A stretch of DNA of 64,000 bases from Asterias rubens (GCF_902459465.1 NW_022985702.1:62001-126000), one strand, 5' to 3'; shown: positions 10,001 to 39,960, numbered from the stretch's first letter. Notes: a model not told the origin generated them from the letters alone. Numbers and translations: made by a program.

Positions 10001-13000
10001 TTTTTTTCACAATGTGGGATTTTTAATAATATTAAAAACAAAATTGAAAAAAATAGAGCGCTATTTGTACTTCCTTTAGCAAACTCACACAGAAAATTTA
10101 TGTTTGGTTTAATAATGCAACACGTGCATGTGAAGACGTTACAATTGAGTGAACATGTACAGATAAACTTGATAGCAAATCATACTCATTTCTACTTCCA
10201 GTGGTAGCACTATTATGGGCACCACACACGCAAAATCGGTGCAGGTCTCCATGGTTCATCACAGTCTACGGAACGTAGTAAGAATTTGGGTTTTAAACTG
10301 ACGAATTGTGCTCGCTGTTTTTTCTTTTTTTTTAAGACTTCAACAAAACGCTGCTTGCAACTTGTTCCCCATGCTATGTGTCAAACGAATAGTACGTTTG
10401 TGAAAAATTGTCCATACAAGCATATTCCAGTATGTGTTGACCAGCGATCATGACACTGGAGTGCCTTTTTGAAATCGAGACCGCGGCTAACACACACATA
10501 CATGTTGCGGTAAATGTAAAAAAAACAAATCGCCCTCTGACTGCCAAGTTTCATGTTATGTTCGTAATTTGATATATAAAAAAATGCTGGCCTAAGTGAT
10601 ATCGAGATGAAAAAAAAGAAGAAAAGGTACTGTTTCTTACCAGTTGTTGTCAACACTCTGATGGCATGGATATGCCACTCTGACCCTGGAACTTCTGCCT
10701 CACGCACAGCCTTGTCAATGCGGAAGGTTGTCCTGTACGGTGGCCAATAGCAATCCTTATCATTTATAAGCCACCTTGTAGACACTATAGCCAGGTCGTC
10801 GTCCTCCCCGGTAAACGCTACTACAGCTTAAGTCATGCTGAAATGGAAGAAACTGTATATGTTTATGATCAATGCAAGAGGGGGAGTATTACATGCTGCT
10901 TTCTGTATGGTAGCATTACGCATTTCCTACCAATGGCTGTTACCTCACACGATTCCAATACACCACTCAACTGAGAAACTCTACAAATGCCGAGATGAGT
11001 GGAGTCCAGAGGATATGAGAACATTTTTTTAACAACTGTGAACTTTTCGAAAACCACAAACTTGTCTTGCTCAACAGTGTAAAAGTTTCTCACAACTACC
11101 ATGTCTTTGTCGATTTCAACACAGTTATCCCCCACAGTACATTTGATGGTGCAATCCTCTCTGTGAAGTTCACTGTAGTGAGAGCTGACATAGCATGCAT
11201 ACGCAGGAAGTGGCCCTATATGCCGCTCCTTCTGAAGAAGACAACCAGCATGTGCGGGATCTTTTTGACGTTTCTCGGATAACCGTCGGGCAACTTGCTG
11301 CAGTGGTGATTCTATGCGTTTAAGCCTTCCCAAGAAGTTTTCGAATTCAAAGCAAGATATGTTGTCGAGATGACCATGCAGTTTCATCTCTTCTGACAAG
11401 TGTACTAACCCGTGTACATTGTATGTTAACATGTCGCGGCCATAAATATCTGCAAACTGATGGATGAAAGACACCAACAAGTCATGAGCATACTGGCTGT
11501 TGTTGACGCACAGTGATGGATTAAGAAAAATGTGAATTCCTACAGACAAGAGCATAAAATTGTGGTACATATCTTCAGGCAAATAGGTGCGCATCACCAA
11601 TGGGCCGGTGTATAGCAACAGCTGGCGAAATTCTGTAGCCTTCCATCGCTCAAATTCACTTATGGCCCTAGGTTTTCGGGCAAATTCACTGGCAGTGAAA
11701 GGCCTGAAGGACACAAGCATTGTTGACATGCCCTTGACATCTCTTGGGCTTAACCTATTTTTTAAAGGACCTTTCAACCAAAACTTGACAAGTCGGAAGG
11801 TTGAAACCATATCTATCCGAAGTCTAACTAGTGGTGTGCTGCCTTGCAGGTGATGTCCTTTGTTAGCCTTTCTGCGGAAAGAGTCATCAGTTCTCAGTGG
11901 GGCATCAGTTTCTGGAAATGTAACTTTTCCCAAGTACACTCCATATTGATTGCACTTGTCACATCCATAGTAACCGCTATGTCCTTTTACATTCTTTATA
12001 AAAGCACGGGCAGGGGTGTCACACATCACAGCGCTGATATTGAATTCAAAATGTTTTGTCTGGTACATAACACCATCACTTTCAAGACGCTCAGCTTCAT
12101 CAACAAAATCTTGCAAGAAATCGAGGTTGGATGGCTTGCTAGTACCATAGAACAATCCAATAACAAAAGGACCATTTTTGCGACAATTTTCTACCAAACC
12201 AAGAATAGGCCAAAATTGTCCACCAGAACTTTTGAACAAAGGGAGACGGTCAACATTTACTTGCAGAATGACTTTATCACATAACAGGCAAGCCTCGGTC
12301 AGTACCGACAGTACACCTTCCTTGATGCCTTTATGGTAGTACAATCCACCTGAAACACCTTTTGTTATGATTTGAGTATCAGTTTGAAGCAGGGTTCTTG
12401 GGTCTTTGGGCAAGTCTGGGTGATGTTTCTGTAGGATTGACAGAATTCCAGACAACGCTCTGTGGGTTATGTTGTGCTCTGCAGCCCAGCAAGCAAGATC
12501 GTCTTTCATATCATCTCTACTACAACAATCTGTGAGACTGCGAGTTGGCATGGGCATCGCGTTTCCCCTGAAATCATACAATGGGTAAATGTTGGTACAC
12601 TTTACTAATAATAATAATGACATATGTTACAGATGGGCTTTCTCTCCCCTTATCCTGTTCCTTTTGTTATGACATATTTGTTGGTCTTTAAGAACATCTG
12701 TGGTATTTGGCAAAACAGGTCAGTCTGTTTCACAATGTGTATTGTTAGATGTTATGCAACGGTCATAATGTAACATTGTGTCCTTAATGTGTTGACACTC
12801 CAAACTTATTGTTAATGTGCAGTGGACACAATGTTTAGTATAATTGCCCACTGCATTGTGTGATGTTTCTAGCCTATAAAATACTGGGTATGCCTCTTGC
12901 TGGGTTACACTCATCACTCCGCCACCACTGAGTCAGCCAGGGGCTCTGCCCAACCCATACATTGATGGGTGTCACCACTCCAACCGTCGGCCACACCATT

Positions 13001-18227: not shown

Positions 18228-21200
18228 ATGGCCCACAATGGTAGAGCAAGAGGCCCTTATAAGCGATATCTTCAAGACGATACAAAAGAGGTTCCCAGTC
18301 GTAGTTGCAGCAGATTCAAACGTTACAAGAAATCTCGAGCACCACATACACAACGAATCGTCAACGCCGAACGCGAAGTCGACACATCCCTTCATGATCA
18401 TGCGAGCGAGACGGTCATTAATAACAGGTAGGTAAACCGGTCTGGGAGGAGGTATATCTGTATCTGGCTACATAAATATAGGCTACATATATTAAATCGC
18501 GGAGGCCATTTATGCCCCAAAATGAAAGAATATAACATCAAACTGCCACCTGCAATTTTAGTCTCATAGTAGTCACATTAATAATTTTCTCCTACAGTAC
18601 AACTACAAGCTACATTAACCCTCATAACAAAAAATCCTATACAGAAGAAGTGGGTAATGTCTATTTATATTATAAACAAATATATTTTAGTAAATTAGTA
18701 GTAAGTATTGGGAATTATTGAGGAAAACCTCAAAATTGCGTGTGCAATCTCAACACTGTCCCCACTGAGCAAATCCAAAAACTCAACAGTCTGTTTACTC
18801 ACTCAGTCTTGTCAGTCATTGTCACTCAGTCACTAAGTTAAAGATTACTGGTTAAGACAGTGATCATTTTCTTCTTTTCTTCAGAAGTGCCACAGAGTGT
18901 TTGCCAACAACGTCAAGTGAAATTAGACACCCTGCTTTAGTGCTTTCAGCATGTCCAGTTCCAGAACGGGTGAGTAATTTTTTTCTGTGTTTTATAATCC
19001 GTAACAGGTGCATTTGTGTGCACGTACATGTAACCAAAACTTTGTAGGGTGCGGACCGTGACCTTAATCCCACCGGCACCACCTAATAATGGTTGACGTT
19101 ATTAGCATTTTATCTTGCAACAACGGAGAGCAATCTCAAAATTGCGAGCACATTTTTCAATTGAACAATTATCCAAAGAATGCGCTCAACAGTTGCCAAG
19201 CGTAGCAATTGATGTATTTACAAGTGCTTGCAGTCTTCTGCTGTCAAGTATAAAAACTGTTTACACATACATAGGCCCTGATGTCTTGTGTTCTGGCTGC
19301 TTTGGTGGTCATCATGTTATATATCAATTAATCCATCAACCTATTTGTACGCTGATCAGTAGGTCACATCTAATTTCAAAAGGCAAATCGGACTCCCATC
19401 CATGAAAAATAAGTTATAAAAAAGTACATGTGCCAATATTTTTTTACTCTTGAAGATTACTGTATTCTGTCCCATTCTAATAAATTTTGACACTGGTGTG
19501 GTTTGACATCAATATTCATGATTCCTAACTAACTTTGCAAACATCACAAACAAATATTCACGAGCAAATATCATAAACATTTTGTTCTGTTGCATGCAGG
19601 TTCACAGCAACATTTATTCTTCTGATAATGGCGATGATCAATCAGAGCCTAATCACTCTGGCTCCGAAGATGGCGATGATCGACCACAGGCTCATCACTC
19701 GGACTCCGAAGATGGCGATGATCGACCAGAGGCTCATGACATGCAGGTACAGTTTACTGTTTTGTGTGCAGTCCCCTTAAACCTTTAGTTGAACAAAATT
19801 GACAAATCATTGGCATGCCATGTGCACAAAACTTGTTACCGTTTCTCACAGACTGGAAATTACATGTCTATATCTTTCCGCTGCATACATATATTGTAAA
19901 GGATTAGATTTTCTCGGTTAGAGCGGTTCACATGGTGTTACTAAAATCATTCATTTCTTATTTTGTACCTATAATAATGCCCTTCATCTGTCTTTTGTTG
20001 TTTACCTTTCCGCAGGGAGCACATGAGAAAGTTTCAGCTGGTTCAGCTCTGACAAAGTTTCAACTACTGATACTGCTTCTAAGCTTCGTCATCCGACACC
20101 ATCTGAGCGACAGTGGACTTGGTGACTTGTTGAAGATTTTAAACCTCATCCAACTAGACTGTGTCCCTAAAACTAAGTATCGGTTTTATGCGAACTTTAA
20201 GACAACCAAGGAAACAGTTGAAATGCACTTCTACTGCGATGATTGCCTTGCCTATATTGGCATGGACCCTCTAGTTTCCCACTGCCCAGATTGTAAATGT
20301 CCTTTTTCCAAAAGAGACAGTAAATGTAGGGGAAATTTTTTCTTGTATCTTCCGATAGCCCAACAACTTAAAGAACTGTTCGAAAATCCAGGCCTTGCAA
20401 ATTTAATCAGGACACCTGTTAATAATGGAAATATCAGGGATATCTCGGACGGACTAAGTTATCAAAAGCTAAAAGCAAACGGTGCATTTAATGACAGACA
20501 TAGCATATCATTGATGTGGAACTCGGACGGTGTCCCTTTATTTAAAAGCTCAAATTATTCACTAAACCCCATTCAATGTATAATTAATGAGGTTCCACCA
20601 AAAGAACGATCAAAAAATGTAATCCTTGCAGCTTTGTGGTTTGGCCCAAGAAAACCCAAAACAGAGACATTGTTTCGCCCTTTCGTTTTTGAAATGAACA
20701 AATTAAAGCGAGAGGGTGTGACATTTAAAATAGGTAATGAAACCTTCTGTTCAAAGGTGTGTGCACCACTTTGTTCTTGTGACTCTCCTGCTAGAGCACC
20801 GCTGCAAAACATCAAGCAGTTCAATGGGTTACATGGATGCAATTTTTGTTTACATCCTGGAGAAACGGTTGAAAGAGGCCATGGCAGATGTAGAGTTTAT
20901 CCATTAACAACTCCATTGCCTGAACACAGGACTGCCCAAAACATGAAAGTCCATGCAACCCAGTCAATTGAGCAAAGAGAATGTGTATTTGGTGTCAAAG
21001 GGCCCACGGTATTGTCTTGTTTACCAAGATTTGATATTTCGTGGGGATTTGTTCCAGAATACATGCATGCAGTTGCACTTGGTGTTGTGAGGTCATTTGT
21101 TTCGAAGTGGTTTGATTCAAGTTCACATAATACAGCATATTATCTTGGACGAAACGTTAATGAGGTTAACAAGCGACTTACTTCCATTAAACCGCCAAAT

Positions 21201-21275
21201 GAAGTGTCTAGACTTCCAAGATCTATGAAAGAGTCAACATTTTGGAAAGCTACTGAGTGGAAAAACTTCCTGGCT
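18228..21275 (+). pseudogene. Second CACTA/EnSpm-family transposase, spliced, 3'-truncated
   Basis: Exon 1 RGPYKRYLQD...VP; acidic repeat exon 19600-19746; main exon from 20016 with CxxC pairs, SLMWNSDGVPLFKSS, CDSPARAPLQNIKQFNGLHGCNFC, PEYMHAVALGV, WKATEWKNFL, then unrelated sequence. Confidence 0.88.
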
Positions 21276-21483
21276 GTATCACAGTAAAATTATACTAACC
21301 AAATACAGTTTTCACTTTAATTTTAATATAAGTATACTGTAGTTTTACTATATAATTAACATATTTTGTTTAATATAGTAAAACTACAGTAAGTGAAACT
21401 TCATTTGTACTTCAAATATTATAGGTTTACTTTGGATAGTACAATAAAACTATAGTAAAAATACAGTCGATTTTTATAAGGGA
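21276..21483. mobile_element. Candidate CMC-type terminal fragment (possible right end of the second CACTA-like element)
   Basis: AT-rich block with repeated actacagta/tactgtag motifs ending TTTTTATAAGGG; begins where the transposase breaks off; no matching left end found. Confidence 0.35.
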
Positions 21484-22839
21484 TGCCATGGTTAGATCGC
21501 TCCATTATTTTGCAGGAATGGCGCACTGGGTACAACTATTCACCCATTGTGCAAACAGGTGAAACTGTCCACATTGCACCAGTCACTCAAAATATTAGAT
21601 TCAAAGAACAAAGTAAATGACGTCAATGACGCCATAGACATTATCATTTTAAAAAAAGCCCTCACGTATTAGAGCTTCTTAACTAGAATTTCTTTTAACT
21701 AATTTAAAATGCTTAATTTATCATACACAAACATGGTATGGGAGAAAACTCCCTAGAAATTAAGTTCGCAAAGATACTTCTTTCAATATTATTTTGAAAT
21801 ATCAGAAATTCAACTGAAGTTGTTGATCTTAAGTTAGCTTAAATTTGTCAATCAAAGCTATAACTAAAATATCTAGAATTACTGGCAGGTACTGTAGGTT
21901 ACTTCTTTTATCTTCACCTTTTGTTTTTTTTGTAGACCAAGTAAGTCGGCTACAACATCATCCGCGTTAAAGTATTTTTTTATCACTTGACTAATTTTAC
22001 TATGAGTCAGAAAAAAAAAGAGATCAAAAAGTTTTCACTCCCGACCATGATGACACTGTCAAAGGAATTAACGTATTTCCTGAATGTCGCTCTTTGACCA
22101 TGTACAATATTTACACACCACCGGTGGTGTTCACTGGAGTGAACGAGATTACGTAATACATTAAACAAGTGAATTGAAAATTTTACAGTATCGCTCAATT
22201 CGTGGAAAATATCTGAGTGATTTTGACAAAAGCATGACGTCACAGTTGTGGGTTAAGTAGCATCATGCCCTCAGTGAGCGCGCCATTCGCGGGTTCGAAT
22301 GGTGCGCACCTCTGGCATTATCCTGTACATAAATGAGAAGCTAGTTTGGCTGGGTGTAGCTGAATGAGTATGTCACCAAAGATAAGGACACCAATGTCTA
22401 TTACTAAGCAGAATCATTTAAGATTTTGTGACCAGATGAACTTGGGTTAGAACTCCTTGAACATAAAGCATGGCTTGCAGGACACATGATTTTAAACAAT
22501 TTTTCATTAGGATACACACAAAATTTTCAAATTAAATTCCTAGAGTCATACAAGCCCTTCAACCTGACTTTCACTAATCATGACCAGAAATATTTCAACC
22601 AGTCCAGTGAGAGCCAAATCAAGATTTCAGGAGAGCTTGGACACACCACTTCATCATACAATTGAAAAAGTGTTGACATTTTTGGACTGAGGCAATTATA
22701 TGCCTTCCAGCAGTTTGATATGATTGTGGATCCAATGGCAACATATTCTTAAATCCAAGGAGTAAGTGTTGCTGAATCCCGTTTGGACACCTCAATCACA
22801 ATAATGTCTTAGCAAATAATTTGGATCAGTTGAAGACAA

Positions 22840-23202
22840 TTAAAGATGCTATGTCAGATATTTGGCCCCAAACATTAAAAAAAAATTGTTTTTGAGTGAA
22901 TGGTATTTCAATGAGTATCACCCGCTGTAACGAAAAAAAGGTTAACTTTTACTTTTAATGGTCAGGAACCATGACAAAAAATTAAAACGGTTATTGTAAA
23001 ACACACAATAATTGGTCACATGATCCCGACAAAATCTATTTTTGAGCACTTTGTTTCACTACTACTAATAATTGGCGGACTTTTTCGAGCAATGGCTCAA
23101 ATGAAAGCTTGTAACTTTCTCGACCCCCATCAAAATACCTATTGAATTTTAAATCAAAATTTTTGAGTCAAATCGGCCAAAAATCTGACATAGCATCTTT
23201 AA
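22840..23202. mobile_element. TTAA-flanked MITE (Kolobok/piggyBac-type target)
   Basis: ttaaagatgctatgtcagat...atctgacatagcatctttaa terminal inverted repeats. Confidence 0.75.
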
Positions 23203-23924
23203 TTGTGGAGAAGTTATGATGTGAGTACCAGAGCTGCCAACAAAGTTCCATGAAAAAGCAACTCGATCATCTTTCCTTGTTCCGATTAACAAGTTTTAAT
23301 TCTCCTAGATTATGAATTTTTTCCCCCTTCTGCTTATTGGCAGATATTTATACTATATGGGGCAGAAGGTATGTTATGTTGACTAGATGTAGTCAACAGA
23401 ATTTGCCTGGATTTATTAAAACAGAGGTGGAAATCTTGGTTAGGCTCTCACTGTTCTTGTGAAAATCTTTCAGATCTTTATTAAATGTAAGCCATTAAGA
23501 TAAGTTTATGTACAATCCCGTAAAAACATCTTCATCAATTGTTTTTTGTTATCATTTGACTAAAGTATTAATTTAAACCAGTTTTGATTTGTGTCCTCAA
23601 ACGTATCTATGCAGACATGATATTCTTCCCACTACTCTAATTTCAGATTCGTTTTTATCCTACTTTCCTCCAACGGCCAAATATCATGCCTGTTTATGTA
23701 CAGTATGTGAGTGGTATGTTAATTTGGCTAGATGTAGCCAACTGAGTGTGCCATAACTATTTGATGGACACCAAATCCCACTTACTGAAGGCACCTGTAC
23801 CTGTCATTGAGAATATAGTGGGAATTGTAATTTGTCTTCCACCCAACTGAGAATGCCATTCTGGGATTGTCAAAAAGGTTTAACATATTAGCTATTTGTA
23901 GTGAGATAAATCACCCTAGTTCCT

Positions 23925-24098
23925 TTAAAGGAACACATTGCTGTGTTCGCGATGTAAAAGACAAACTGTGCAATTTTGAGTAAATCTTGTGTGGATCATT
24001 AAATATTCTACTTTATAACCATTTACATTTCATAACAAACGGTTTCAAATGCTTTTAAAAGACAAACTCGTGCGATCAAAGGCAACATGTTCCTTTAA
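23925..24098. mobile_element. TTAA-flanked MITE
   Basis: ttaaaggaacacattgc ... gcaacatgttcctttaa termini. Confidence 0.65.
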
Positions 24099-24141
24099 AT
24101 ATATCTGTCACTAAATTATGTAATCTTGGCTTTGTATAGAG

Positions 24142-24823
24142 CATGGAGGAAGGAAGAGAAGGAGTTTGACTGGCCTGCCAGGGTATTCACAAAGTCGTCT
24201 TTGATTACAGGGTTTCTTGTCGCACGTCTCTCACACAGCGAGAATCAAGCTCTGATATAACATTGGAGTTACCAAATTCGAACTCACTAACGGATTCGAC
24301 TATGCATGCACAGTAGCTGTGTCCAGGGTGTTTAAGTGCGCCATGTTTCCATGTAATTTTATAAAACAAGCTGAATTTTTGGATGGTTTGAACGTCGCGA
24401 TCTGCTTTTTTTGCCGCAAGAACAAGGGATATTTGTATCCATTTTTGAAGAAAATATTATGAGAAATATGGGATTATATTTGATATTTGTGTGATAATAT
24501 GGGCATTCTAACCTTTTCCTAAAGTTCAATTAAGGGATCGTGTACATGATGGTTTCCTTTGTCTATTTGAATATTCTGTTTGGTGGAGCGATGTGGAGCA
24601 TTTTGATTATGAGGCAGTTTAAAATTGATATTGGACAAAACTTTGTCAGAAATGCTACATAATGCATGCGCCCATCTTGCCACAATGCAACGCGGCTTGT
24701 GTCTGGCTTGGGCCCTTAGCGGAATTTGCGCTTTGTTACCCACAGCTGTTTTACATCCGTGACAAGAAAGTCTGTGTCTTTAATATGAAGCTCACTTGAA
24801 CTCCTTCTCTTCCTTTCTCCATG
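24142..24823. mobile_element. Non-autonomous TIR element with CATG...CATG ends and a 7-bp TSD (P-element-like)
   Basis: TIR catggaggaaggaagagaaggagtt versus aactccttctcttcctttctccatg; direct repeat TATAGAG at 24135-24141 and 24824-24830. Confidence 0.7.
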
Positions 24824-25352
24824 TATAGAGGTAACCAATCCAGCAAGCAATTTAAAATATCATGAATGAAAGAAAATGTTCATCAATGCAAAAGGGAAAC
24901 ATACCCGGTAATCTATTTTGGCTAGATGTAGGCAATTGTGTTTACCAAAAGTAAGATACCGAATTCCATTTATGACCCTTTATACCTGCACCAATGATGC
25001 TGTACTGCAGTGGTAGTTCTAATTCAGCTAGATGTAGCTGATTGAGACTGCCATGCTTATTTCAGCAGCTCTAGGCATAAGGATGTGTAGTTCATTGCAA
25101 TGTAGCGGTGTACTAGTTTGGTCAGGTGTGGCTGAATGAGTTTGCCAAAAGTACATGGAAAGAAATTGTTCTGCCGGATAATTTAGGTGTTGGACTAGTG
25201 AGGTTTCTATGAATGACAAGCTAGTTTGGCTAGATGTAGCTGAATGAGTGTGTCACCAAAGATAAGGACACCAATGTCAGTTAATTTGCAAAACCATTTC
25301 AGATTTTAATTAGGTCAGGTGCAAAAACAATAGTAGTTAAGATAGACTCTCT

Positions 25353-25600
25353 GGAACACTTTGACCTTTGCCCTAGAGGACAATGAGAGGTCAAACTGTA
25401 CCCCAAATAGGGTAGAAATATGGAACACTTTGCCCTTTGCCCTAGAGAACAATGAGAGGTCAAACTGTACCCCAAATAGGGTAGAAATATGGAACACTTT
25501 GCCCTTTGCCCTAGAGAACAATGAGAGGTCAAACTGTACCCAAAATAGGGTAGAAATATGGAACACTTTTAATTTGACCTTCCTTCAGAGAGGTCAAACT
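25353..25600. repeat. 69-bp tandem repeat, 3 full copies plus partial
   Basis: Units start at 25353, 25422, 25491 and 25560 (ggaacactttgccctttgccctagagaacaatgagaggtcaaactg...). Confidence 0.95.
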
Positions 25601-25689
25601 GTGCCCGAAATGGGTTAAAAACAGTTAAAATTTCTCGCTGTGGTGCAATGCATAGGTAGTGTGTGTGTGTGTGTGTGTATTGGTATAGC

Positions 25690-25945
25690 AGTTGACAGGG
25701 GAATCCCGGAACAAGGGGTCGCGTGTGGGAATGACGTTGCAGTATTACTGGTCAGTGGTGGTGGGGATAATCCCCGAACAAAGGTCGCGTGTGGGAATGA
25801 CGTTGCAGTATTACTGGATAGTTGACAGGGAAATCCCCGAACAAAGGTCGCGTGTGGGAATGATGTTGCAGTATTACTATTACTGGTCAGTGCTGGTAGG
25901 AAATATCCTCCGACAAAGAGGGCGTGTGAAAATGACGTTGCAGTT
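25690..25945 (+). promoter_or_regulatory. Four approximately 65-bp repeats, each with a kB-like site and a TGACGT (CRE/ATF) motif
   Basis: GGGGAATCCC 25698, GGGGATAATCCCC 25763, GGGAAATCCC 25828, degenerate GGAAATATCC 25899; TGACGT at 25732, 25798, 25933 (TGATGT at 25861); TATAAA at 25997. Confidence 0.6.
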
Positions 25946-26058: not shown

Positions 26059-26484
26059 ATGTCTGCAGAAAAACATCATCGTTCGGATGCATCTTCAAGG
26101 GTTGAGCCACTGTGTGATGGGTTGCGTTATCTGCGTCAACAAAACCAAACGGAGGACGTTACTTATCCGCGACTAGTTCATTTATCTACACGACTAAATA
26201 AAAAACAGTTAGAACAGTTAACCTCAAAGCTGTTTGAAGAATTCGACGACCCAGAAATCTTTGAAAAGTCATTGGAAAAACTTGTTTTAGCACTTGGTTC
26301 TTCAAATGCCGACATATATAAACATAAAATAAACCATATGTATAATCCTTGGTCTATGTGTTTTGGCGCTTTATTACATTGGTATCAACGTAACTATGAA
26401 GAAGCCACGATTGAAAAGATGATATTGGCGTGTCAACGAAGTAATATGTTTTATAATGTATATGAATTTTTAATTCCAGCATAA
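26059..26484 (+). CDS. Intronless Death-domain-like protein (Polinton accessory gene)
   Basis: LEKLVLALGSSNADIYKHKINHMYNPWSMCFGALLHWYQRNYEEATIEKMILACQRS fits the DD pattern L..LG.S..DI......P.......L..W.......AT...L..A. The start context GTCATCATG is identical to that at 30916 and 31268. Confidence 0.7.
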   Translation: MSAEKHHRSDASSRVEPLCDGLRYLRQQNQTEDVTYPRLVHLSTRLNKKQLEQLTSKLFEEFDDPEIFEKSLEKLVLALGSSNADIYKHKINHMYNPWSMCFGALLHWYQRNYEEATIEKMILACQRSNMFYNVYEFLIPA

Positions 26485-29017: not shown

Positions 29018-30105
29018 ATGGGGGAGATGAAAGATTGGGTCGATTACTTATACACTTTATATTATGACATTGAACATGAATCGGGGTTAAGTAGCGTTGA
29101 AAAGTTATATCAGAGAGTCAAAGCCGAGGGTGTGTACGAGTTGTCTCGGAAACAAATAGTTCAATACTTGGAAAAACAAGATACTTATACTTTGCATAAA
29201 CCAATAAAAAGAACTTTTCCTAGAAATCGTGTTCTCGCCATTGCAATTGATGAAATATGGCAACTTGATCTATGTGATGCTCAAGCGCTTTCAAGATATA
29301 ATAAGGGGTATAAATACATATTAACATGTATCGATGTGTTTTCCAAATTTGCTTGGGCAAGACCACTGAAAAATAAGAGGTAAAACGATCCTAAATGCCT
29401 TTAGATCCATTGTAAATAGTGGTCAAAAGAGGGCCCCTCTGAGAGTCCAAACGGACGAGGGTAAGGAGTTCTTGAATTCTCATGTGCAAGAATTCTTAAC
29501 TCATCACTAAATTGAATTTTACACTACAAATAACAAAACACAAAGCTAGCGTCATAGAGAGATTTAATTCTACCTTGAATACAAAACTTTGGAAATTATT
29601 TTCATATCAAAATACCTTCAAGTACAAAGATGTGTTGCAAAAAGTGATCAATACGTATAATAATTCGACACATAGATCGATACGTATGAAACCCAACGAA
29701 GTGTCTGAAGAAAATGACGGGAAAGTGTGGAAGGCGTTGTATAGTGATGCCAGACATGCAGCCAAACCTAAATATAAGTTTAAGATCGGAGACTCGGTTA
29801 GGATTAGCATAGCGGCAAAAGTATTTCGAAAAGGATATTTACCCAAATGGTCCGAGGAAATATTCACCATCGATCGACGTATACGAAATGTAAGACCATT
29901 ATATGTTTTGAAAGATTATGGAGGCGAGGAGCTGAAGTGTACCTTTTACGAGGAGGAATTACAGAAAGTTTTAAAAGATACGTTTGATACGTACAGAGTG
30001 GAAAAAGTTTTTCGTCAGAGAACAAAACTTGGCCAAAAGGAATATTTTGTAAAGTGGTTGGGATATCCCTCTTCGTTCAACAGTTTGGTAACTAAACTCG
30101 AATAA
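29018..30105 (+). pseudogene. int: Polinton retroviral-like (rve) integrase with C-terminal chromodomain; frameshifts and a stop
   Basis: YTLHKPIKRTF, WQLDLCD, ILTCIDVFSKFAW, QTDEGKEF, ASVIERFNSTL, YNNSTHRSIRMKP, KGYLPKWSEEIF, EYFVKWLGYPSSFNS. Confidence 0.95.
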
Positions 30106-30154
30106 TAACGGGGATCCGACATGCCTGCAGGCAGAAACTACTCAAACTCGAAAC

Positions 30155-30910
30155 ATGTCGGACCGTCAATTCTATTTGACCCTTCCTAGCAATGCCTCTC
30201 TGGATGTGTATCCGAACAATACACTATCGGATTACACGACCAGACTATTTAATCCTATTCAACTAACTGGTAATTGGGAGGTCGGTCTGAGCGAAATTCA
30301 ATATCCTCATTGTTATTTTAACATAACGGATGGAAATAATTCGCTGACCTACTCTGAAAATGGTAAACTGACAAGATATTTAAAAATACCACATGGCTAC
30401 TACAGTTCTATTCAAGAGCTTCTCGAAACCATCAATGAACTTATGGTTGACGAAGCCAAGCCGAGTATAAGTTTGACGGTAGACAGAAAATCTAAAAAAG
30501 TTTTAGTGAGATTGAAACCGGGTGCTTACGTAATATTTAACGATGGATTATACAATTCACTAGGATTGCCTCGCAAAACACTCTTTGAAACGACAATAGG
30601 AACTCGACCTTCTGACATTTATTCTGGAATTTATAGTTTGTACATATATAGTGATATCATAGAACCTCAATATGTAGGCGATTCTAACGTTCCCTTGATA
30701 AAAATAGTACCGCTAAAGACAGGTAATAAAACCATGGGGGAAATGATATCCACGTCTTACAGTATGCCTCATTATATACCAGTTAAAACAAAGAACTTTG
30801 ACACGATAAATTTGACTATAAGAAACAATGCTGGATTCAAATTTTCATTCGAACGAGGTAAAGTCATCGTGAAACTACACTTTCGTCAGGTCCGCCCTCC
30901 CCTTTTTTAG
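30155..30910 (+). CDS. Polinton minor capsid (penton) protein; ORF intact
   Basis: FYLTLPSNAS...NT.SDY.T.L..PI.L.GNWEVGLSEIQYP and YIYSDIIEPQYVGDS.VPLIKIVP; position after the integrase. Confidence 0.88.
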   Translation: MSDRQFYLTLPSNASLDVYPNNTLSDYTTRLFNPIQLTGNWEVGLSEIQYPHCYFNITDGNNSLTYSENGKLTRYLKIPHGYYSSIQELLETINELMVDEAKPSISLTVDRKSKKVLVRLKPGAYVIFNDGLYNSLGLPRKTLFETTIGTRPSDIYSGIYSLYIYSDIIEPQYVGDSNVPLIKIVPLKTGNKTMGEMISTSYSMPHYIPVKTKNFDTINLTIRNNAGFKFSFERGKVIVKLHFRQVRPPLF

Positions 30911-30915
30911 TCATC

Positions 30916-31260
30916 ATGTCACTCTACGAACAGTATTATAAAGCTCAGGCGGGAGGTGGAAACTACTTCAAAGGAGCACCGATGCAAAGGGGTTATGGTT
31001 TAGGTGGAATTCTCTCCGGGTTATTCCGTCAGCTCTCCCCATCCTGACATGGGGAGCTAAGACAATTGGGAAACAAGCTCTCCAGACTGGTCTGCAAATG
31101 GCTAATGATGCACTTAAGGGTTAAACTACCCCCATCGCTCGTCAACCGAAGAAAAAACTAACCCATGGAGTACGCAAGAAGGTTATAAAGAGAAAGGGTC
31201 GAGGTCGACCCACCATTTCATCCGCTAGGAAGCGTCCACTCGATATATTTGATGTTAAAT
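30916..31260 (+). pseudogene. Small Gly-rich/basic virion core-like protein; frameshifted
   Basis: MSLYEQYYKAQAGGGNYFKGAPMQRGYGLGGILSGLF followed by a basic tail; lies between minor and major capsid genes. Confidence 0.75.
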
Positions 31261-31267
31261 CGTCATC

Positions 31268-32590
31268 ATGGCTTTTGCTCATAAGAATTCCTCAGAATGT
31301 ACCAAGTCAGAGCTGGACCTCTTTTCTTTGCCCGGTACGCAGGCTAGTTTGACCAGGGCCAGTTGGATACAGTTTCAACCTCTGACAAATATCGTGGACG
31401 CTGGTCCGATTGAATTTGTAATAAATGGATCCAGCGATACTTACTTGGACTTGGCGCAGACCATGCTTCACGTACAGGCTAAAATCGTGGGTGCTGATTG
31501 AGCGGCACTAGACGATGACGTACCTGTGGCCCCCGTAAATCTAATGTTACAGTCTCTATTTTCCGAAGTCGACGTGTCCTTAAATGATCGTGTAATAACG
31601 CCATCAACTAACACGTACCAATACCGATCTGTCTTCGAATCGTTTTTCAGTTATGGGCCAGCCGCTAAGTCGTCTCACCTCACGTCGGGATTATTCTATA
31701 AAGATTCAGCCGGGAAAATGGATGTTACTGATCCCACGATCGAAGATGTAGACAATCGCAATGAAGGATTACATCAAAGGTTTCTACACACAAAGGGGAG
31801 CAAACTGGTGGACCTGATAGGACCTATACACGCCGACATATTTTTTGTTATTAAACGGTGTTTCCATGAAAATAAAATTGCACCGTTCGAAGGATTCTTT
31901 CTGTCTCATGTCTTCTACACCCGATGCAGATTACAAAGTAAAGATTCAGAGCGCTACCTTGTACATTCGAAGAGTCAGCGTGAATCCCACGGTAGCTTTA
32001 GCCCAGGCAAACACATTGGAGCAAACAACTGCAAAATATCCATTATGCAGAGTGGAGTTAAAAACATTCTCCGTTCCGCAAGGCAATCAATCTTTTACGA
32101 GGGAAAGGATGTTTCTGGGTCAGACTCCCAAACGCATTGTTTTAGGTTGTGTTGAAAATACGGCTATAAATGGGGATTTTAAGAAAAACCCATACAATTT
32201 CAAACATTTTAATTTAAACTTTTTAGCGCTGTATATAGACGGGGAACAACTGCCTTGGAAACCACTCAAACCAAAATTTGTGGGACCCGACAGTAATTAT
32301 CTCATGGCATATCAGACGTTATTTTCGGGTCTAAACAATCTTCATCAGAATTCTGGAAACGATATTTCTAGATCGGATTACGCTAACGGTTACACCCTCT
32401 ATGCATTTGACTTGACTCCAGATCTGTGTTCCGGCGGTCATTTTAATCTAATACGAAGCGGTAATGTACGCTTGGAGCTCGCCTTTAGAGATCCATTGAT
32501 TAACACCGTGAATGTACTCGTTTATGCGGAGTCAATTCGATTCCAGAAATAGACAAGTCCCGTAACATACTGATTGATTATTCATTCTGA
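31268..32590 (+). pseudogene. Polinton major capsid (double jelly-roll) protein; stop and frameshifts
   Basis: ECTKSELDLFSLP.TQ, GPIEFVI.G, YLDL..T.LHV, NLMLQSLFSEVDVSLN, PKRIVLG.V.N.A.NGDFKKNPYNFKHF, GYTLYAFDLTPD, G.VRLELAF. Spread over three ORF-track pieces. Confidence 0.93.
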
Positions 32591-33093
32591 AAACTGACAA
32601 AATAACCAGACAACACAATGGTGGCGTTTTTCCCATAGATAAGTTACCCGAAAAAATTTCCAGCTTTCCTATTCTATATGTCATAAATACAGACAAAAGT
32701 GATAAACCGGGGATGCATTGGGTCGCTTTATATTTTAATGAAGACAAAAGGGCAGAATTTTTCGATTCATACGGTAACCCACTAGACAAATACGATGCGC
32801 ATTTAATGCGGTTTATTGATAGACATTCCTCGGGGGTCTTATACAATGACCGCTGTCTTCAGTCTCTGGACAGTACAGTCTGCGGTCAGTATTGTATCAT
32901 GTTTGCTCAATACAGGTGTAGGAACGTTGCAATGCAGACTATTGTTCGCATGCTCACTAGGGATACCCGTTATAATGATGCGTTTGTACATAACTTTGTG
33001 GAATCCCTCTACAACGTTGCTCTACCAATATCACATGGTGATTTTATTATTAATCAAATTGTGAAAAGTTTTCAAAGTATTGTAAATAAATAG
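32590..33093 (+). pseudogene. Adenain-like cysteine protease; start codon apparently lost
   Basis: GVFPIDKLP, VINTDKSDKPGMHWVALY (His), AEFFDSYG (Asp), LQSLDSTVCGQYC (Gln, Cys). Confidence 0.92.
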
Positions 33094-33372
33094 CCTCTTT
33101 TTATTGTATAAAAAGTTTGTCGTGTCTTTTTGAATAAAAGTTTTGATTAATTAAATAAATGAAGTAAAGTTTTAAGTAAAAACAAACAAAAACCAAGTTT
33201 AAATAAAATAACAACAGACAAAACAAAGTTTGAATTAGTTAATTAATAACCAAAGACAAAAATAAAAACGCAATTACAATGTATAAATATTATATTTCAT
33301 GTACTTTATTTTATTTCGCAATAAAACAACAAAAATACAATTGACAATTGTTTATCATTATTGTTTACGTTA

Positions 33373-34131
33373 TTACAAAGACTCCCAAAGTAACTGTTTT
33401 TTAGGTCTGTGTCTAGAATAGGCCCGTGTGACTCTCTTTCGATTAGCTTTTGAAGTTGCGGTAGGCAACACGGGTAGTACCCTTTTTTCATTCGGTGTCA
33501 TCAAGTTTTGCTTGTGACGTTGGACTATGGTTCGGCGTGACACATTACCCACTAGCGTTTCGGGCACGTTCATACTCGCCAAACCACGTACAAATTGTTG
33601 CCATCCAAGAGGGTCAAATCCTTTTGTAGCGTGTAAAACATCATTGATTAAATCCGTAATGTTAGATCCCTTAACCACATCTTCACCAATTTTTAGCTCG
33701 CCCATATCGTTCCAATTCATGGCGTCATTCTTTTTAATTTTTTCTAATAATAGTTGGGCTTTATGCTTGTACGTCTTGGGCACACCCTCAATGATTTCTG
33801 CGGCAGTGTCAGGTTGATTTACAGGGGTTACCGTATTTGTTTTGGTGACATCTTCGGTCATGTCATAATATCCTTTCGGATTACTCATAGTCACTGATAT
33901 GGGTTCTTGTTTTCTGGCTCGATCAAACTGTAGGTAGCGTTGGAGCGCTTGTTGATACAAAAGTACCTTGGTGTTGTCATCCAGGTCGGTTCTGTCCAGA
34001 GTATCCTTCATGTCCCGTTCCAGCGATTGTACTTTTGTTTCTCCAATGTCACTTTTCAAAAGTACATTTTGAATGGCACGTGTGACTTGATCCGCGGTAG
34101 CGTTCATCTCAATCTTCTTGGCGTAACGCAT
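33373..34131 (-). CDS. Conserved Polinton core gene (PW/PZ class)
   Basis: KVLLYQQALQRYL, MNWNDMGEL, KGSNITDLIND, PLGWQQFVRGL..MNVP..LVGN. ATG overlaps the upstream stop (TGATG at 34133-34129). Confidence 0.8.
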   Translation of the reverse strand: MRYAKKIEMNATADQVTRAIQNVLLKSDIGETKVQSLERDMKDTLDRTDLDDNTKVLLYQQALQRYLQFDRARKQEPISVTMSNPKGYYDMTEDVTKTNTVTPVNQPDTAAEIIEGVPKTYKHKAQLLLEKIKKNDAMNWNDMGELKIGEDVVKGSNITDLINDVLHATKGFDPLGWQQFVRGLASMNVPETLVGNVSRRTIVQRHKQNLMTPNEKRVLPVLPTATSKANRKRVTRAYSRHRPKKQLLWESL

Positions 34132-34461
34132 CAGTTTCCTAGGAACAGACCACCTAATGCTCTTAAGATGGGTGCAATGAGCGAACCAAAAAAAGCCACC
34201 TTTTTGCACGAGTAGATGTTTTCGTTTCTTGTGTGACAGTCGTTTATTAGCCAATTGTCTCAGGTGTGTCTTGTGACGTGATAACTTCTTCCTATGAGCA
34301 GAAGTCAAATGTACATGGCCTTTTAATACGTTCAAAGCACATTCGCACAGATATGATATCAGTTCTTTGTCGGCTCCTTTTATAATATCTTTCCTTATTT
34401 TGGGTGAAGACTTGCCCAATAGTTTTAGAGTATGGGCATTGTTCCCGAGTCGATGCGTCAT
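34131..34461 (-). CDS. Small basic Polinton core protein ending in a QKGGF motif (PW/PZ class); 1-nt homopolymer frameshift
   Basis: ADKELISYLCECALNVLKGHV.L...KKLSRHK..LR.L...LLVQKGGF. Removing one T from the T7 run at about 34188-34194 restores FFGSLIAPILRALGGLFLGN-stop. Confidence 0.8.
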
Positions 34462-34499
34462 CTTGACAAAATGAAGACAAAGGCATTTGTACGGGTCTA

Positions 34500-34794
34500 T
34501 TATACTTTGGGTATATAGGCGTAGGGCGTCTCTCCCTTGAATATTTTTGTGTCGTGGGTCGAGGTGATCGGACCAATCGTCCGGCAACCCCTCCACAAAT
34601 TGTATACCAGGTACACTATCAGAAAATTTTTGGAAAAGCGGCTGAAATTCTCCATAACGCCACAAAATTCTCTCAGGTGTATCAAGAATAACATCATTTT
34701 TCTGTTCCAATAACTTTTTTACAAAGACTGTTTTCCCACTGGAACTTGGTCCGGCAATGATGCAAGTAAATGGATGTTGCAGTTTAGTCGACAT
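34500..34794 (-). pseudogene. A32/FtsK-like packaging ATPase with a large internal deletion
   Basis: LQHPFTCIIAGPSSSGKT (Walker A), ILWRYGEFQPLF, FVEGLP, then directly, in another frame, the C-terminal TKIFKGETPYAYIPKV-stop; Walker B region absent. Confidence 0.88.
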
Positions 34795-35044
34795 GAGATC
34801 GTCTGAAGTTAAAAATAATAATACAGAGTATAAAAATAGCACTGAAAAAAAAAGCTTTGCGATTGGTTATTCGAGCGATGTACTGTTCACAAGAAAAAGA
34901 GTCAATAAATCCTTTACATGTTCTTCTCGAACCATAGTCTTTCCAAATAAAACGGATGCAATACGTAATCAGCAAAATAATAATTAAAATCAGTTTAAGC
35001 ATACGTGTTTTATCCCGTGTGCTTGTATTTGACGTTGCATCCAT
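34784..35044 (-). CDS. 86-aa protein with two predicted transmembrane segments (Polinton accessory)
   Basis: Hydrophobic runs LKLILIIILLITYCIRFIW and AFFFSAIFILCIIIFNF; fills the gap between the polB stop and the ATPase start, overlapping the latter. Confidence 0.5.
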   Translation of the reverse strand: MDATSNTSTRDKTRMLKLILIIILLITYCIRFIWKDYGSRRTCKGFIDSFSCEQYIARITNRKAFFFSAIFILCIIIFNFRRSHVD

Positions 35045-35057
35045 GATGTTTAGAAGC

Positions 35058-35985
35058 TCAATGAGTGGTTGACGTGGGTGTGCCAGCTTTATAACCGTAG
35101 GGTACGGTGTTGTACTGATCTACTCTAACCCTCTTGCTATAGACGACGCGGTAATCTTTTGTGCTTGACTTGGTCAGTATTTCTTTAGTTTTACTGTTCC
35201 TTACTATTTTATGAGGGTCTGATATCATAATTTTATGAGGGCCTACACCTTTTACCATGTCGACCACTGAATCAAAATTAATCTGTTGTGAATTTCTAAA
35301 GTTTAGGGTAAAGCCCCGCACTTTACAGCAGGTTTTTCCAGTGTCTAATCGATACGGGTAGTTCTTGGGCCCCCCCCCCCGACACAAATGTCTCTATATA
35401 ATTTCCATCTTTTGGGTTTAACTCATTCGTCAAATCGCCCAGATAATCACCCTCTGGAGGATTGTACTGTCCCGGTTTGGTTACGTATAAGACACTGTCT
35501 GTATCGTAATACAATACGGACTCTTGCAATTGTTCGAGTAGTTCGTAGAGCTTGAGTCTAGCATGGGCAGTAGTAAAAGCTGCAATAACCACATCTGTTT
35601 TGGCGTTTGGTTCAACAAACTCTTCTTCGGCTTCGTATCGAACTTCAGCAATTTCGTGATTAATGAAATTTATGTCATGTACAATCTTATCATCTGCCAA
35701 TAGAATGTCATTCAGTTTGGCTGGATCACTTATCACTTCGACTTTTGGCATGTTAATTCTCTGACCAAATTTTCCCCAGAAACTATTTAGCATCAGTTTG
35801 GCAAGGGCTCTCAGGCCTGGATTCTTTGTAATTTTGGATGCATCTAAATGTATCCCTTCGTGTTCATAATAGTCATTTAGATATTGTGTCTTGTCTTGTT
35901 CGCTGACGACCCATGATGGCCACCCAGAAGCTTCAACTTTAAGCTTAAGAAAAGTGTTAATATACTCCGTGAATAAACCACCCGT
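35058..35985 (-). pseudogene. polB: Protein-primed family B DNA polymerase, C-terminal part
   Basis: GGLFTEYINTFLKLKVEASGWP, GLRALAKLMLNSFWGKFGQ, AAFTTAHARLKLY, VLYYDTDSV, YLGDLTNEL, KVRGFTLN, VPYGY; one frameshift near 35370. Confidence 0.95.
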
Positions 35986-36908
35986 GTCTACTTCACTCTA
36001 CTTACCGGTAGAGTCGAATTACTAATTTGCATATTCCCTATGCCGTGAGGCAGAAATTCTAAGACTTTTACACACAGTAGCGCCCTCCACCGTCCTACCC
36101 ATAACGCCCCGCGACATGCCCGTCACGGAGTCGTCCTCTTTTCTCTTAGCCGCGAGTGGGTGAGGTTGTGTTTTAAATCTGTTCCAACAGTTCATAAGAA
36201 AACCGTTGTCTAAACCTTATCCTCGCTAAGAGTGCTATAAAAAGACTAGAAAGATTGTAGAGTTTTAGTTGTTGTGTTGTAGTGAGTTGTGAAATAAACT
36301 ATAGTTTGATTTCGTTGAGAAAATAATGAGTAGCGTAAAGAAACTGGGGAGGGCTTCGACTGTCAGTACTGGGGTTACGTCCGTTTCCCTGGGACAGTCG
36401 GAGCTCTCGGGGGACTGCGCCGGCGACACTACGTCGCCCGGCTTGCAGTCCTCCAGCCAGCCTACGCAGCCTCTGTCGGCAGAGGCTGTGTCGGCCGGAA
36501 GACCCACCGATCAAAGAGGTTGCTTACCGCTCCCCCTCCTCGGTCAGTGTGCGTGGGTCGACCCAGTCGAAGGTCAAGCGCCCCGGCAAGGCCAAGAAAG
36601 CCGGTGCCGGGGCAACGACCAAGAGAGGTAGGGCGAAAGGTGGCTCTGGTCCGGAGCGCACCGCCCACTCTCCCAGCACCGCCTCCGCACGGCTCAGAAT
36701 ACCCAGCCCGCAACGACACCGTGGATTCCCCCACGACGGTTGGTGACGGCCTTTTGCGAGGGTTGAAGACCCACAAGGCACCCGCCCACGCCATAGGCTG
36801 TGGGGTGCTAGCCATGAGGAGAAGGATTATGGGTGCGGAGTCGGGTACCTGGGACGCCCCCAGGATACCCCACTCACAGGGCCCGCCCTCGTCTTCGAAT
36901 TTCATCCG

Positions 36909-38991
36909 TTGCTCGGGCATCCCTGTCACTGGTTTTCGTGCGCCCGCCCGCCCCCCGGTATCGTGGGGCGTGGCGGAAGTGACCTCCCGGTCTCCAGGCG
37001 ACCTCCCGCCGACGGACCCGTGGGAGGTCGCCTTCAGGAATTTTTGGGGTCCTGGGCTCAGATCACGTCCGACAGATGGGTCCTCGAGACAATCGAGTGT
37101 GGCTACGCACTCGATTTCACGAGAACCCCCCCGTCGGACATGCTGATACGGCCAACGCCCACCCCGTCCGACCCTCTCAAGCGCCAGGCCCTCGAAGGGG
37201 AGATCAGTTCCCTTCTCCTCAAACGGGCAATACGCCTTGTCCCCGACCAGGGGACACGGATGGGGTTCATGTCCACTTTCTTCTTAGTTCCCAAGAAGGA
37301 GGCGGACACTTGGCGACCGATCCTGAATTTAAAGCCCCTAAACCGATTTATCCTCCCAAAGCGCTTCCGCATGGAAACGCTGCGGGCAATCCTCGAATCA
37401 ATCGATACACCTGCATGGGGGGCGAGCTTGGACATTCGGGACGCTTACCTCCACGTCCCCATCAGGTCCGAACACTGCAAATTTCTGCGCTTCCTTTACA
37501 ACAGAATGCTATACGAATTTGTGGTACTCCCCTTCGGACTGTCAACCTCCCCTCGAGTTTTTACCCGAGTGGGACGGGCGATCGGAGCAGCACTTTGGAG
37601 ACGAGGACTGCTGATTTTCCAATACCTCGACGATTGGCTGATTGTGGGCCGATCACGGGAGGCAACGGACGCGGCGCTGACACTTACGTGGCGCCTCACG
37701 TCCAGCCTGGGGTTCCTCATCAACATCGAGAAATCGCACCCGATCCCCTCTCAGGTGCCCACCTTTCTCGGTGCGGCTCTCGACTTTCAGAGGGGGCTAG
37801 CCCGCCCTTTGGCGGAATGGGTACAGAACCTTCGGCAGTGCATGGCTCTTTTCCTGGGGGCTACGGTGGCACCGGCGGTAGCCTGGCTCAAGTTACTTGG
37901 TCTCATGGCCAGCATGGTAGACCTAGTAGATTTCTGCAGGCTGAGGATGAGACCTATCCAGCTCCATCTCCTCGCCTACTTTCGGCCCAGCCGTCATTCG
38001 GTCAACCTCCCGGTGCCTACCACGCCTTGGCTGACCCCCCACCTTCAATGGTGGGTGGAGGACGCCAACCTCACATGTGGTCGAGTGTTCCGCCCGCCCC
38101 GACCGTCAGCGACTCATCACCGATGCGTCTCTGTACGGCTGGGGGGCGACCCTCGACCCCCATCAGATAGCGGGGGTGTGGGGCCCGGAACACCACTCGA
38201 CCCACATCAACGTCCTGGAAATGCTGGCGGTCCAGAATGCCCTCCAGCACTTCCGGGCACAGTTAGTGGGGCAGGCCGTCCTGGTGCACTTCGACAACGC
38301 TACAGTGGTAGCGTATATCAATCACCAGGGGGGCACCCGGTCGGCCCGACTGTGTGCACTAGCCTGGGACCTAATCCACTGGTGCATACGGCAGGGGATC
38401 GCCCTGTCGGCGTTGTACATCCCAGGGAAGGAGAATGTCACGGCCGACGCTCTCTCCCGGGGCTGGATCGTCCCGACAGAGTAGTCCCTCCGCCCCTGTG
38501 TGGCCCAGTCGCTCTTCCTGCTTATCGACCGACCTCACGTAGATCTGTTCGCCTCTCGGACGAACAATCAGCTACCGATCTACTGCGCCAGGGGTACCGA
38601 CCCCGGGGCATGGCGGATTGACGCTCTGACTATGCGATGGGAGGGGCTGTTGGCATACGCCTACCCGCCCATCTCCCTCATTCCACGGGTGCTGACAAAG
38701 ATCGAGCAGGATCATTGCAAAGTTCTCTTGATCGCCCCCTTTTGGCCCCTACAGCCCTGGTTCCCTCGGCTGGTCAGGCTCCTGGTGCACAGGCCGGTGG
38801 TTCTCCCACAACGCCCGGACCTCATATACCAGCTCGGGTCCGGAGTGGTTCATCCGACTCCGAGGGACCTGCACCTGACGTGCTGGGTGCTGTCACAAGA
38901 TCCCTCAGAGCAGCGGGCCTTTCGAGACGGGCTGCGGAAATTGCCGCCCAGTCCCGAAGGGCCTCGACTGCCGACTTCGCCATTTCTTTAA
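36909..38991 (+). pseudogene. DIRS RT - RNase H - DAM-like methyltransferase ORF; frameshift and stop
   Basis: FLVPKK...WRPILNLKPLN, LDIRDAYLHVPI, LPFGLSTSPRVFT, QYLDDWL; TDASLYGWGA, HINVLEM, DNATVVAYINHQGGTRS, NVTADALSR; VDLFAS..N, YAYPP, LIAPFWP.QPWFP. Frameshift at about 38100, TAG at 38482-38484. Confidence 0.95.
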
Positions 38992-39960
38992 ATGGTGTAG
39001 GCGGCGAGCTATTCGTCCCACCGATACTTCTGTAGAGGAGGTCGGGGATTTCCTCCTATATCTTTTTGATAGCGGACTGGCAACGGCCACAGTGAAAAAT
39101 TACCGGTCGGCCATTGCAGCAGTCCACGGAGGATTCGCCGACGGCTCGACAGTCTCGGATAACCGGGCGATTGGGCAGCTGACTAAGGGGATGTTTGTCA
39201 CCCGTCCCCCTGTGCGCAAATTGGTCCCATCCTGGGACCTCTTTAGCGTGCTGTCGGCACTAACAAAACCCCCGTTCGAACCACTGAGTGGGGCCACGTT
39301 GCTACATCTAACGGTCAAAGTGGCCTTTTTGGTGGCGGTCACTACGTCTCGCCGACGTAGCGAGCTCCACTCCCTTACAGTGGCGGCGGGGCACATCCGG
39401 TGGGAACCCGGAGGGGTCCGCCTAATCCCTACGCCAGGGTTTTTAGCCAAGAACCAGTCCGGTTCTTTCGAACCTCCAGATATTTTTGTTCCCGACCTTT
39501 AAACCTTTTCGGCGGTCACAGAGGACAAACTTTGGTGCCCGGTATGGGCGCTAAAGTGGTACATCGATCGTACGAAGTCACTCCGAACCGGCCACGAACA
39601 GCTGTTCGTGTCCACGGTTCCACCATTCCGACCGGCATCCCGCGATACAATCGCGCGTTGGATAGTTACAGCCATCCGCTCGGTGCCGGGCGGATGGCCA
39701 GCGACCGATGGTCCAGTTCATGCCCACGAGGTACGGGGGGTGTCGGCCTCATGGGCTTTCTTTAAAGGGGTCTCCATGAGTGACATAACAAGGGCGGCCT
39801 CCTGGAAGAGCCCGTCCACGTTCTCTGACTGCTACCTGAAGGTCGTTCTACAGGTGGATGGGAGAGCGGGTAGAGCGGTGTTGCAGGCGGCCAGCTGCAA
39901 AGCCAGAACAAGCTCCACCTCGTCAGTCTCGTGTTTAGGTGAGTTTTTTTCCACGGTAAT
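38900..39960 (+). pseudogene. DIRS tyrosine recombinase
   Basis: TVKNYRSAI, TSRRRSELHSL (R), FLAKNQ (K), HAHEVRGVSASWA (HxxR), AASWKSPSTFSDCY (W, Y); TAA at 39500-39502 and a short N-terminal deletion relative to the copy at about 53600. Confidence 0.93.

Follow-up and report, generated by a model that had tools for sequence, protein, structure and literature searches.

Short stem-loops in tandem are known from the transferrin-receptor 3′-untranslated region (UTR), which holds five iron-responsive elements (IREs), and from repeat A of Xist, which consists of tandem stem-loop units. In animals, hairpins clustered on one strand are usually microRNA (miRNA) genes, and members of a miRNA family conserve a mature arm but not the loop. 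Here, we describe an array of seven hairpins of 40 to 42 nucleotides (nt) in a 64-kb stretch of the Asterias rubens genome (the window), of which positions 8228 to 34260 are 100% identical to scaffold CABPRM030000009.1 of assembly GCA_902459465.3. We tentatively read the array as a set of protein-binding sites in a plus-strand RNA. The likeness to the transferrin-receptor IREs and to Xist repeat A lies in tandem copies within less than 1 kb, a conserved loop, an irregularity at a fixed distance, covarying stems, and variable linkers; the difference is that the loop and mismatch sequences found here are unrelated to theirs and that the transcript and the binding protein are only proposed. To our knowledge, the structured noncoding RNA families of echinoderms are almost unexplored, and covariation as clear as this at one locus is rare.

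A seven-copy hairpin array

The array extends over about 3 kb (positions 22335 to 25254), and all of its copies lie on the plus strand. Positions 22250 to 25350 correspond to about 84.2 to 87.4 kb of the scaffold. A repeat finder returned one seven-member family, whose copies begin at 22335, 23368, 23713, 24907, 25013, 25107, and 25215, with copy-to-copy spacings of 1033, 345, 1194, 106, 94, and 108 nt. The same seven hairpins, which an initial annotation of the sequence had reported with this size and spacing, were recovered by folding and by a covariance model that was built from the seven copies and run over both strands of the window. The members of the array are as follows.

22335 to 22374, plus strand: hairpin copy 1, GGUG loop, 58.7 bits
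22329 to 22427: segment around copy 1, a near-duplicate of copy 7 that includes about 55 nt of the 3′ flank
23368 to 23407, plus strand: hairpin copy 2, upper stem UUGACUA/UAGUCAA, 60.8 bits
23713 to 23752, plus strand: hairpin copy 3, upper stem UUGGCUA/UAGCCAA, 62.6 bits
23816 to 23862, plus strand: decayed eighth copy, 3′ arm alone recognisable, 16.2 bits, E value of 0.12
24907 to 24946, plus strand: hairpin copy 4, the weakest, with a G·G mismatch and 5 non-pairs, 53.1 bits
25012 to 25052, plus strand: hairpin copy 5, upper stem UCAGCUA/UAGCUGA with a 1-nt bulge, the sole copy with a long flanking stem
25107 to 25146, plus strand: hairpin copy 6, GGUG loop, six G·U pairs, 58.8 bits
25215 to 25254, plus strand: hairpin copy 7, 62.6 bits

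The covariance model matched the seven copies at 53 to 63 bits, in addition to the decayed copy, and gave no credible further match on either strand of the window. A pattern composed of the loop and the upper stem occurred 8 times, compared with 0.11 matches expected. Copy 4, previously singled out as the weakest, indeed contains only 12 Watson-Crick pairs besides its non-pairs and has a z score of −0.7. The degenerate partial copy that had been placed at about 23820 to 23858 was found again at nearly the same position, but its score is weak.

Base pairing is kept on the plus strand

On the plus strand, every copy forms a stem of about 18 pairs capped by a G(A/G)UG tetraloop, as the initial annotation had described; the loop is GAUG in five copies and GGUG in copies 1 and 6. 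The fold energies range from −10.8 to −24.8 kcal/mol, with a mean of about −17, whereas the minus-strand folds are clearly worse (mean of about −11 kcal/mol) and lose the common shape in four copies. Covariation was counted on a 50-column alignment of the seven copies, over the 18 pairs of the common stem, and compared with 500 shuffles. Standard pairs filled 88.1% of the cells, compared with 81.2 ± 2.0 in the shuffles. More tellingly, both-sided (compensatory) changes were present in 11 of the 18 pairs compared with 4.5 ± 1.4 after shuffling, and none of the 500 shuffles reached 11; this count of double changes is the covariation measure least inflated by relatedness. As a control, the pairing partner was slid by 1 to 3 columns, and pairing fell to 29 to 43%. 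The compensated stem changes noted earlier thus stand out above both the shuffled and the slid controls.

The two kinds of near-pairs are distributed very unequally, with G·U in 23 cells of 10 pair columns and A·C in 2 cells of a single column. Since an A·C on one strand is a G·U on the opposite strand, the strand-symmetric decay of a DNA palindrome predicts the two at a ratio of 1:1, and we therefore conclude that pairing is kept specifically on the plus strand. Both this asymmetry and the poorer minus-strand folds agree with the original remark that the G·U pairs work on the plus strand. Collectively, these data support the view that the structure is kept as RNA-type pairing of the plus strand.

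A constant loop and mismatch amid decayed spacers

In the seven-copy alignment, the columns without any change are three loop positions (G, U, and G), the U that opens the 3′ arm, and both members of an A·G mismatch. Nine pairs separate this mismatch (columns 14/37) from the loop, and its presence in 7/7 copies had already been observed. Both arms of the stem vary, and neither is better kept than the other. In pairwise alignments scored against shuffles, the hairpins reached a mean z score of 7.3, while the 55 nt downstream of them gave a z score of about 0 and the 30 nt upstream gave about 0.9; the exception is copies 1 and 7, which have 99 bp in common at 87% identity. The hairpins thus stand out as conserved islands, the sequence around them having decayed past alignment. 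The claim that the spacers are diverged except for about 100 bp of copies 1 and 7 is thereby confirmed, and selection on RNA structure, which the initial annotation had invoked, is borne out by the compensation, the one-strand G·U pairs, and the survival of the hairpins as islands between unalignable spacers. These findings point to a functional RNA structure.

Tandem Repeats Finder (TRF) reported no tandem repeat at 22.3 to 25.3 kb. A satellite or tandem repeat was rejected because the whole unit is not homogeneous, with spacer similarity at a z score of about 0 and a blank TRF result.

Later insertions within the array

Three elements interrupt the array, namely, two miniature inverted-repeat transposable elements (MITEs) and one larger element with terminal inverted repeats (TIRs).

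22840 to 23202: MITE of very high copy number with 32-bp TIRs, between TTAA sites (contig depth; loose contig ends at 22840 and 23202)
23924 to 24099: second high-copy MITE, TTAA flanked (repeat search and contig depth)
24142 to 24823: TIR element with 25-bp TIRs and a TATAGAG target-site duplication (flanks read; element boundaries)

The first MITE sits between copies 1 and 2, and the last exon annotated for LOC117305804, an NCBI gene model, comes from the TIR element. In one sequencing run, contigs of a related form lack positions 23864 to 24825. All three elements were inserted after the array had arisen, and the earlier view that the array predates the TIR insertions is upheld by the target-site duplications, the element boundaries, and the related form from which 23864 to 24825 is missing.

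Just upstream of copy 3, a unit of about 100 bp (23603 to 23701) has 22-nt inverted-repeat ends that are 77% complementary. Its contig depth is in about 200-fold excess, and it is probably another MITE.

A candidate protein-recognised stem-loop array

We propose, with a probability of roughly 40%, that the locus is a multivalent protein-binding stem-loop array carried by a plus-strand noncoding or intronic RNA. The combination that marks such arrays, a constant loop with an irregularity at a fixed distance on covarying stems, is found here, and no mature arm is conserved; a protein-recognised array is therefore favored. The initial annotation had put forward multivalent protein binding as the alternative to a comparison with miRNAs, and it is this alternative that fits the conservation pattern better. 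According to our proposal, an old and locally duplicated stem-loop array would act as RNA on the plus strand, and selection would act on the pairing of the stem, on the G(A/G)UG tetraloop and the A-U pair that closes it, and on the A·G mismatch nine pairs below the loop. A plus-strand noncoding or intronic transcript of Asterias rubens would thus carry seven to eight sites for one RNA-binding protein, and the presence of several sites per transcript may allow multivalent binding by that protein. The hairpins, their covariation and strand asymmetry, the decayed spacers, and the later insertions are shown by the sequence; transcription of the array, its protein partner, and the purpose of the binding are what we infer.

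Plus-strand transcription of the array is plausible. The gene model LOC117305804 runs on the plus strand, as do the copies, and its last intron (20622 to 24137) encloses copies 1 to 3. In addition, a marine metatranscriptome contig of 163 nt (25012 to 25174, one mismatch, depth of 3.6) spans copies 5 and 6 and gives a mere hint of RNA. For Asterias rubens, strand-specific ribo-depleted RNA-seq as well as small-RNA libraries, both untreated and oxidised, have been described (PMC6085071).

Several observations nevertheless weigh against the proposal. All seven sequences are paralogues of one locus and represent no independent lineages, and the GRUG loop has no match to a protein partner or to a known motif. 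The available RNA evidence for the array is not firm: the metatranscriptome contig could be DNA, LOC117305804 is a prediction derived from a transposable element (it is spliced from 20621 into exon 24138 to 24260, inside the TIR element), and copies 4 to 7 lie past its 3′ end. Moreover, the read evidence consists of assembled contigs, which carry no strand or small-RNA information and whose depth reflects both copy number and expression. Contig depth over copies 4 to 7 was, in three runs that shared one profile, several-fold above that of the neighboring single-copy sequence, copies 1 and 2 showed no excess depth, and contigs of about 87 to 91% identity to the array segment exist. The raised depth, together with the diverged contigs, suggests that the genome holds a few paralogous arrays rather than that the array is expressed. 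These data fit an array that lies in a low-copy repeated segment, which is also compatible with a mobile-element origin.

If the array is transcribed, its 40-nt stem-loop, constant in tetraloop and mismatch and present seven times, would constitute a small, readily testable module that could be used to capture the partner protein. A wider claim, which we regard as possible but open to considerable doubt, is that the hairpins represent a new class of echinoderm structured RNA, being either the first nonvertebrate short-hairpin small RNAs that bypass Drosha or Dicer or a module that recruits a lineage-specific protein by a logic like that of Xist repeat A. Should this hold, either the biogenesis of small RNAs from short hairpins would reach beyond vertebrates or a new example of a multivalent RNA-protein scaffold would be at hand.

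The adjacent transposon and its subterminal repeats

The array is surrounded by mobile elements, and two transposase genes precede it in the window.

10869 to 12623, minus strand: Transposase_21 (CACTA/EnSpm-like) gene
18228 to 21287, plus strand: Transposase_21 (CACTA/EnSpm-like) gene

The plus-strand transposase aligns over the first approximately 400 to 445 residues of its relatives of about 700 amino acids, the alignment ending at 21281, and its C-terminal part was found nowhere in the window. The possibility that the array is an insertion in this Transposase_21 element was rejected, as the C-terminal part does not reappear beyond the array. Directly after the open reading frame (ORF; stop at 21287), a cluster of the motif ACTGYAGTTTTAC occurs in both orientations at 21336 to 21467, and the segment from 18228 to 21467 is an internally deleted Transposase_21 element with a subterminal ACTGYAGTTTTAC cluster of its own. 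In a full-length relative from another genome, a motif array of this kind follows the ORF closely (12756 to 12999) and is composed of 32-nt subterminal repeats of that element's own; the hairpin model gave no match to this relative.

That the units might be subterminal repeats of a DNA transposon had been named in the initial annotation among the findings that would speak against an RNA function, and for the adjacent element the outcome was negative. Since this element, with its unrelated motif, ends at 21467, about 870 nt before copy 1, the hairpins are not its subterminal repeats. The array does share with repeats of the CACTA/EnSpm type the presence of short repeated motifs, some of them inverted pairs, and such a transposase gene adjoins it. 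However, the hairpins keep pairing rather than sequence, point in one direction, and have no second set at an opposite end, whereas subterminal repeats occur at both ends and in both orientations; the copies are all on the plus strand and lack bracketing TIRs. A search of the window for inverted repeats or TIRs bracketing the array, of a Polinton or another element, found none.

Alternative explanations

The main rival to a protein-recognised array is a noncanonical small-RNA cluster, which we consider doubtful. Here, a polycistronic plus-strand transcript would give rise to the 42-nt hairpins, which would mature either independently of Dicer, through slicing by Argonaute as in the mir-451 type, or through a Dicer able to accommodate tight loops. 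Animal miRNA clusters usually look like this, with paralogous hairpins on one strand at intervals of about 100 nt and spacers that have diverged, and a UGU stands at the junction of the loop and the 3′ arm. The flanks of copy 5 form an extended stem of about 33 positions, and Dicer-processed miRNA hairpins with tight loops of 3 to 4 nt have been reported in the annelid Capitella (PMC8915122). Like vertebrate pre-mir-451, the hairpins measure about 42 nt, with a stem of 17 to 18 bp and a 4-nt loop, and lie about 100 nt from neighboring hairpins. Unlike it, they show no sequence similarity, no Rfam match, no consistent basal stem for Drosha, and no conserved seeds, and they form seven tandem paralogues in an echinoderm instead of one hairpin beside mir-144. 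A consistent basal stem of about 11 bp, as Drosha cropping requires, is missing in that wide-flank folds share no extension, and flank pairing beats shuffles (P < 0.05) in copies 1 and 5 only, with a P value of about 0.05 for the sum. It is the loop and not an arm that is best conserved, and the candidate seeds, which on the 5′ arm read AGAAGCU, GUAUGUU (twice), GUAAUCU, GUAGUUC, GUGUACU, and ACAAGCU, differ among most copies. Argonaute slicing of the 3′ arm requires unbroken pairing at about guide positions 9 to 12, yet the invariant A·G falls at guide position 9 or 10 and, with the next two, often open pairs (15/36 and 16/35, unpaired in 1/7 and 3/7 copies, respectively), covers guide positions 9 to 11. 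A stem of 18 bp is, in turn, too short for a Dicer duplex. The canonical polycistronic miRNA clusters resemble the array in their one-strand paralogous hairpins about 100 nt apart, diverged spacers, and compensated stems, but their stems of 33 to 35 bp are about twice as long, their loops measure about 10 nt or more, and their arm or seed is kept over the loop, whereas here the 4-nt loop is kept over both arms, no mature-strand signature is present, and no family matches. Rfam 15 returned only noise and no miRNA family, both when the entire window was searched at the gathering threshold and at E values of up to 10 over 22000 to 25700, which agrees with the earlier statement that no known family was recognised. 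Of the analogy that had been drawn to mir-451 and miRNA clusters, the 42-nt size and the spacing of about 100 nt hold, while the basal stem, the conserved arm or seed, and the central pairing do not.

Two further explanations place the palindromes in DNA instead of RNA. In one of them, which appears unlikely, the hairpins would serve as single-stranded DNA, either as an array within a nonautonomous mobile element, Helitron-like or otherwise handling single strands, or as palindromic units that insert next to each other. Mobile elements do crowd the scaffold, the raised depth over copies 4 to 7 in three runs and the contigs of about 87 to 91% identity imply paralogous copies, and independent insertion of units would predict unalignable spacers. 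On the other hand, the copies keep one orientation and, in part, a regular spacing of 94 to 108 nt, and none occurs elsewhere in the 64 kb; the array lacks a bracketing TIR pair and the units lack flanking target-site duplications, the adjacent Transposase_21 element has a different subterminal motif, and copies 1 and 2 lack excess depth. The one-strand G·T wobbles likewise favor RNA over a DNA-level role. If the array did belong to a mobile element, it would reveal an unusual transposon that keeps a single-strand hairpin array under selection. Highly improbable, in our view, is the remaining explanation that the hairpins have no function and are quasi-palindromes kept paired by template switching during replication, one arm being copied from the other. 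Template switching is documented to make and repair hairpins and to yield apparent compensatory substitutions (bioRxiv 10.1101/2021.04.15.439925; PMC8794818), and it can thus mimic compensatory change. It yields Watson-Crick pairs, however, and leaves the 23 one-strand G·U pairs, the invariant mismatch, and the loop unexplained, nor does it account for the survival of hairpins amid spacers decayed beyond recognition.

Search for relatives of the array

Six subsequences of the hairpin retrieved only unrelated bacterial primers from the literature. A gapped two-loop pattern matched 40 loci in JGI metagenome contigs, of which 0/40 contained the hairpin; the loci with multiple matches that were read (L008 and L010) are unrelated minisatellites. 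A 15-mer scan of IMG/VR gave 68 single matches, one per contig, which were, without inspection, taken as chance. Two ORFs were used as a route to paralogous arrays. No protein shares words with a spurious ORF of 63 codons across copies 5 to 7, and an ORF of 141 codons at 26059 to 26484 gave a single match, on a 576-nt contig.

A tRNA or short interspersed element (SINE) origin was rejected, as no tRNA genes were found. C/D box and H/ACA RNAs, the selenocysteine insertion sequence (SECIS), the IRE, and the histone stem-loop were rejected by eye, their defining motifs being absent or unconserved across the copies.

Other features of the surroundings

Immediately upstream of copy 1, positions 22258 to 22326 form a GC-rich hairpin of 25 pairs (−28.9 kcal/mol) with a near-perfect 12-bp core, GCGCGCCATTCG/CGAATGGTGCGC. 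Because its contig depth in one run is in about 30-fold excess, this segment probably belongs to a dispersed repeat. A TGACGTCA palindrome, the cAMP response element (CRE), is present at 22236 to 22243. Directly to the right of copy 7 lie two blocks of tandem repeats, 25352 to 25642 (69 bp, 3 to 4 times) and 25689 to 25945 (63 to 66 bp, about 4 times), separated by a (GT)10 run. The 141-codon ORF stands to the right of these blocks, and its sole database relative is a 95% identical protein of 113 amino acids, encoded by the 576-nt contig.

Farther to the right, 29500 to 46000 contains a Polinton/Maverick-like gene set, with a chromo-domain ORF in the integrase region (29512 to 30105), an A32-type ATPase, and a protein-primed polymerase split over 40574 to 42578; Polinton TIRs were not found in the window. 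A GC-rich element with a reverse transcriptase, bounded by inverted terminal repeats, breaks the set at about 35986 to 40440. Four related terminal-repeat blocks, at 35986 to 36151, 40094 to 40439, 49444 to 49608, and 52344 to 52627, are 85 to 100% complementary and bound two GC-rich elements, one with an RVT_1 domain (36909 to 38621) and the other with a tyrosine-recombinase SAM-like domain (52957 to 53841). These two elements look like copies or fragments of a DIRS-like retroelement.

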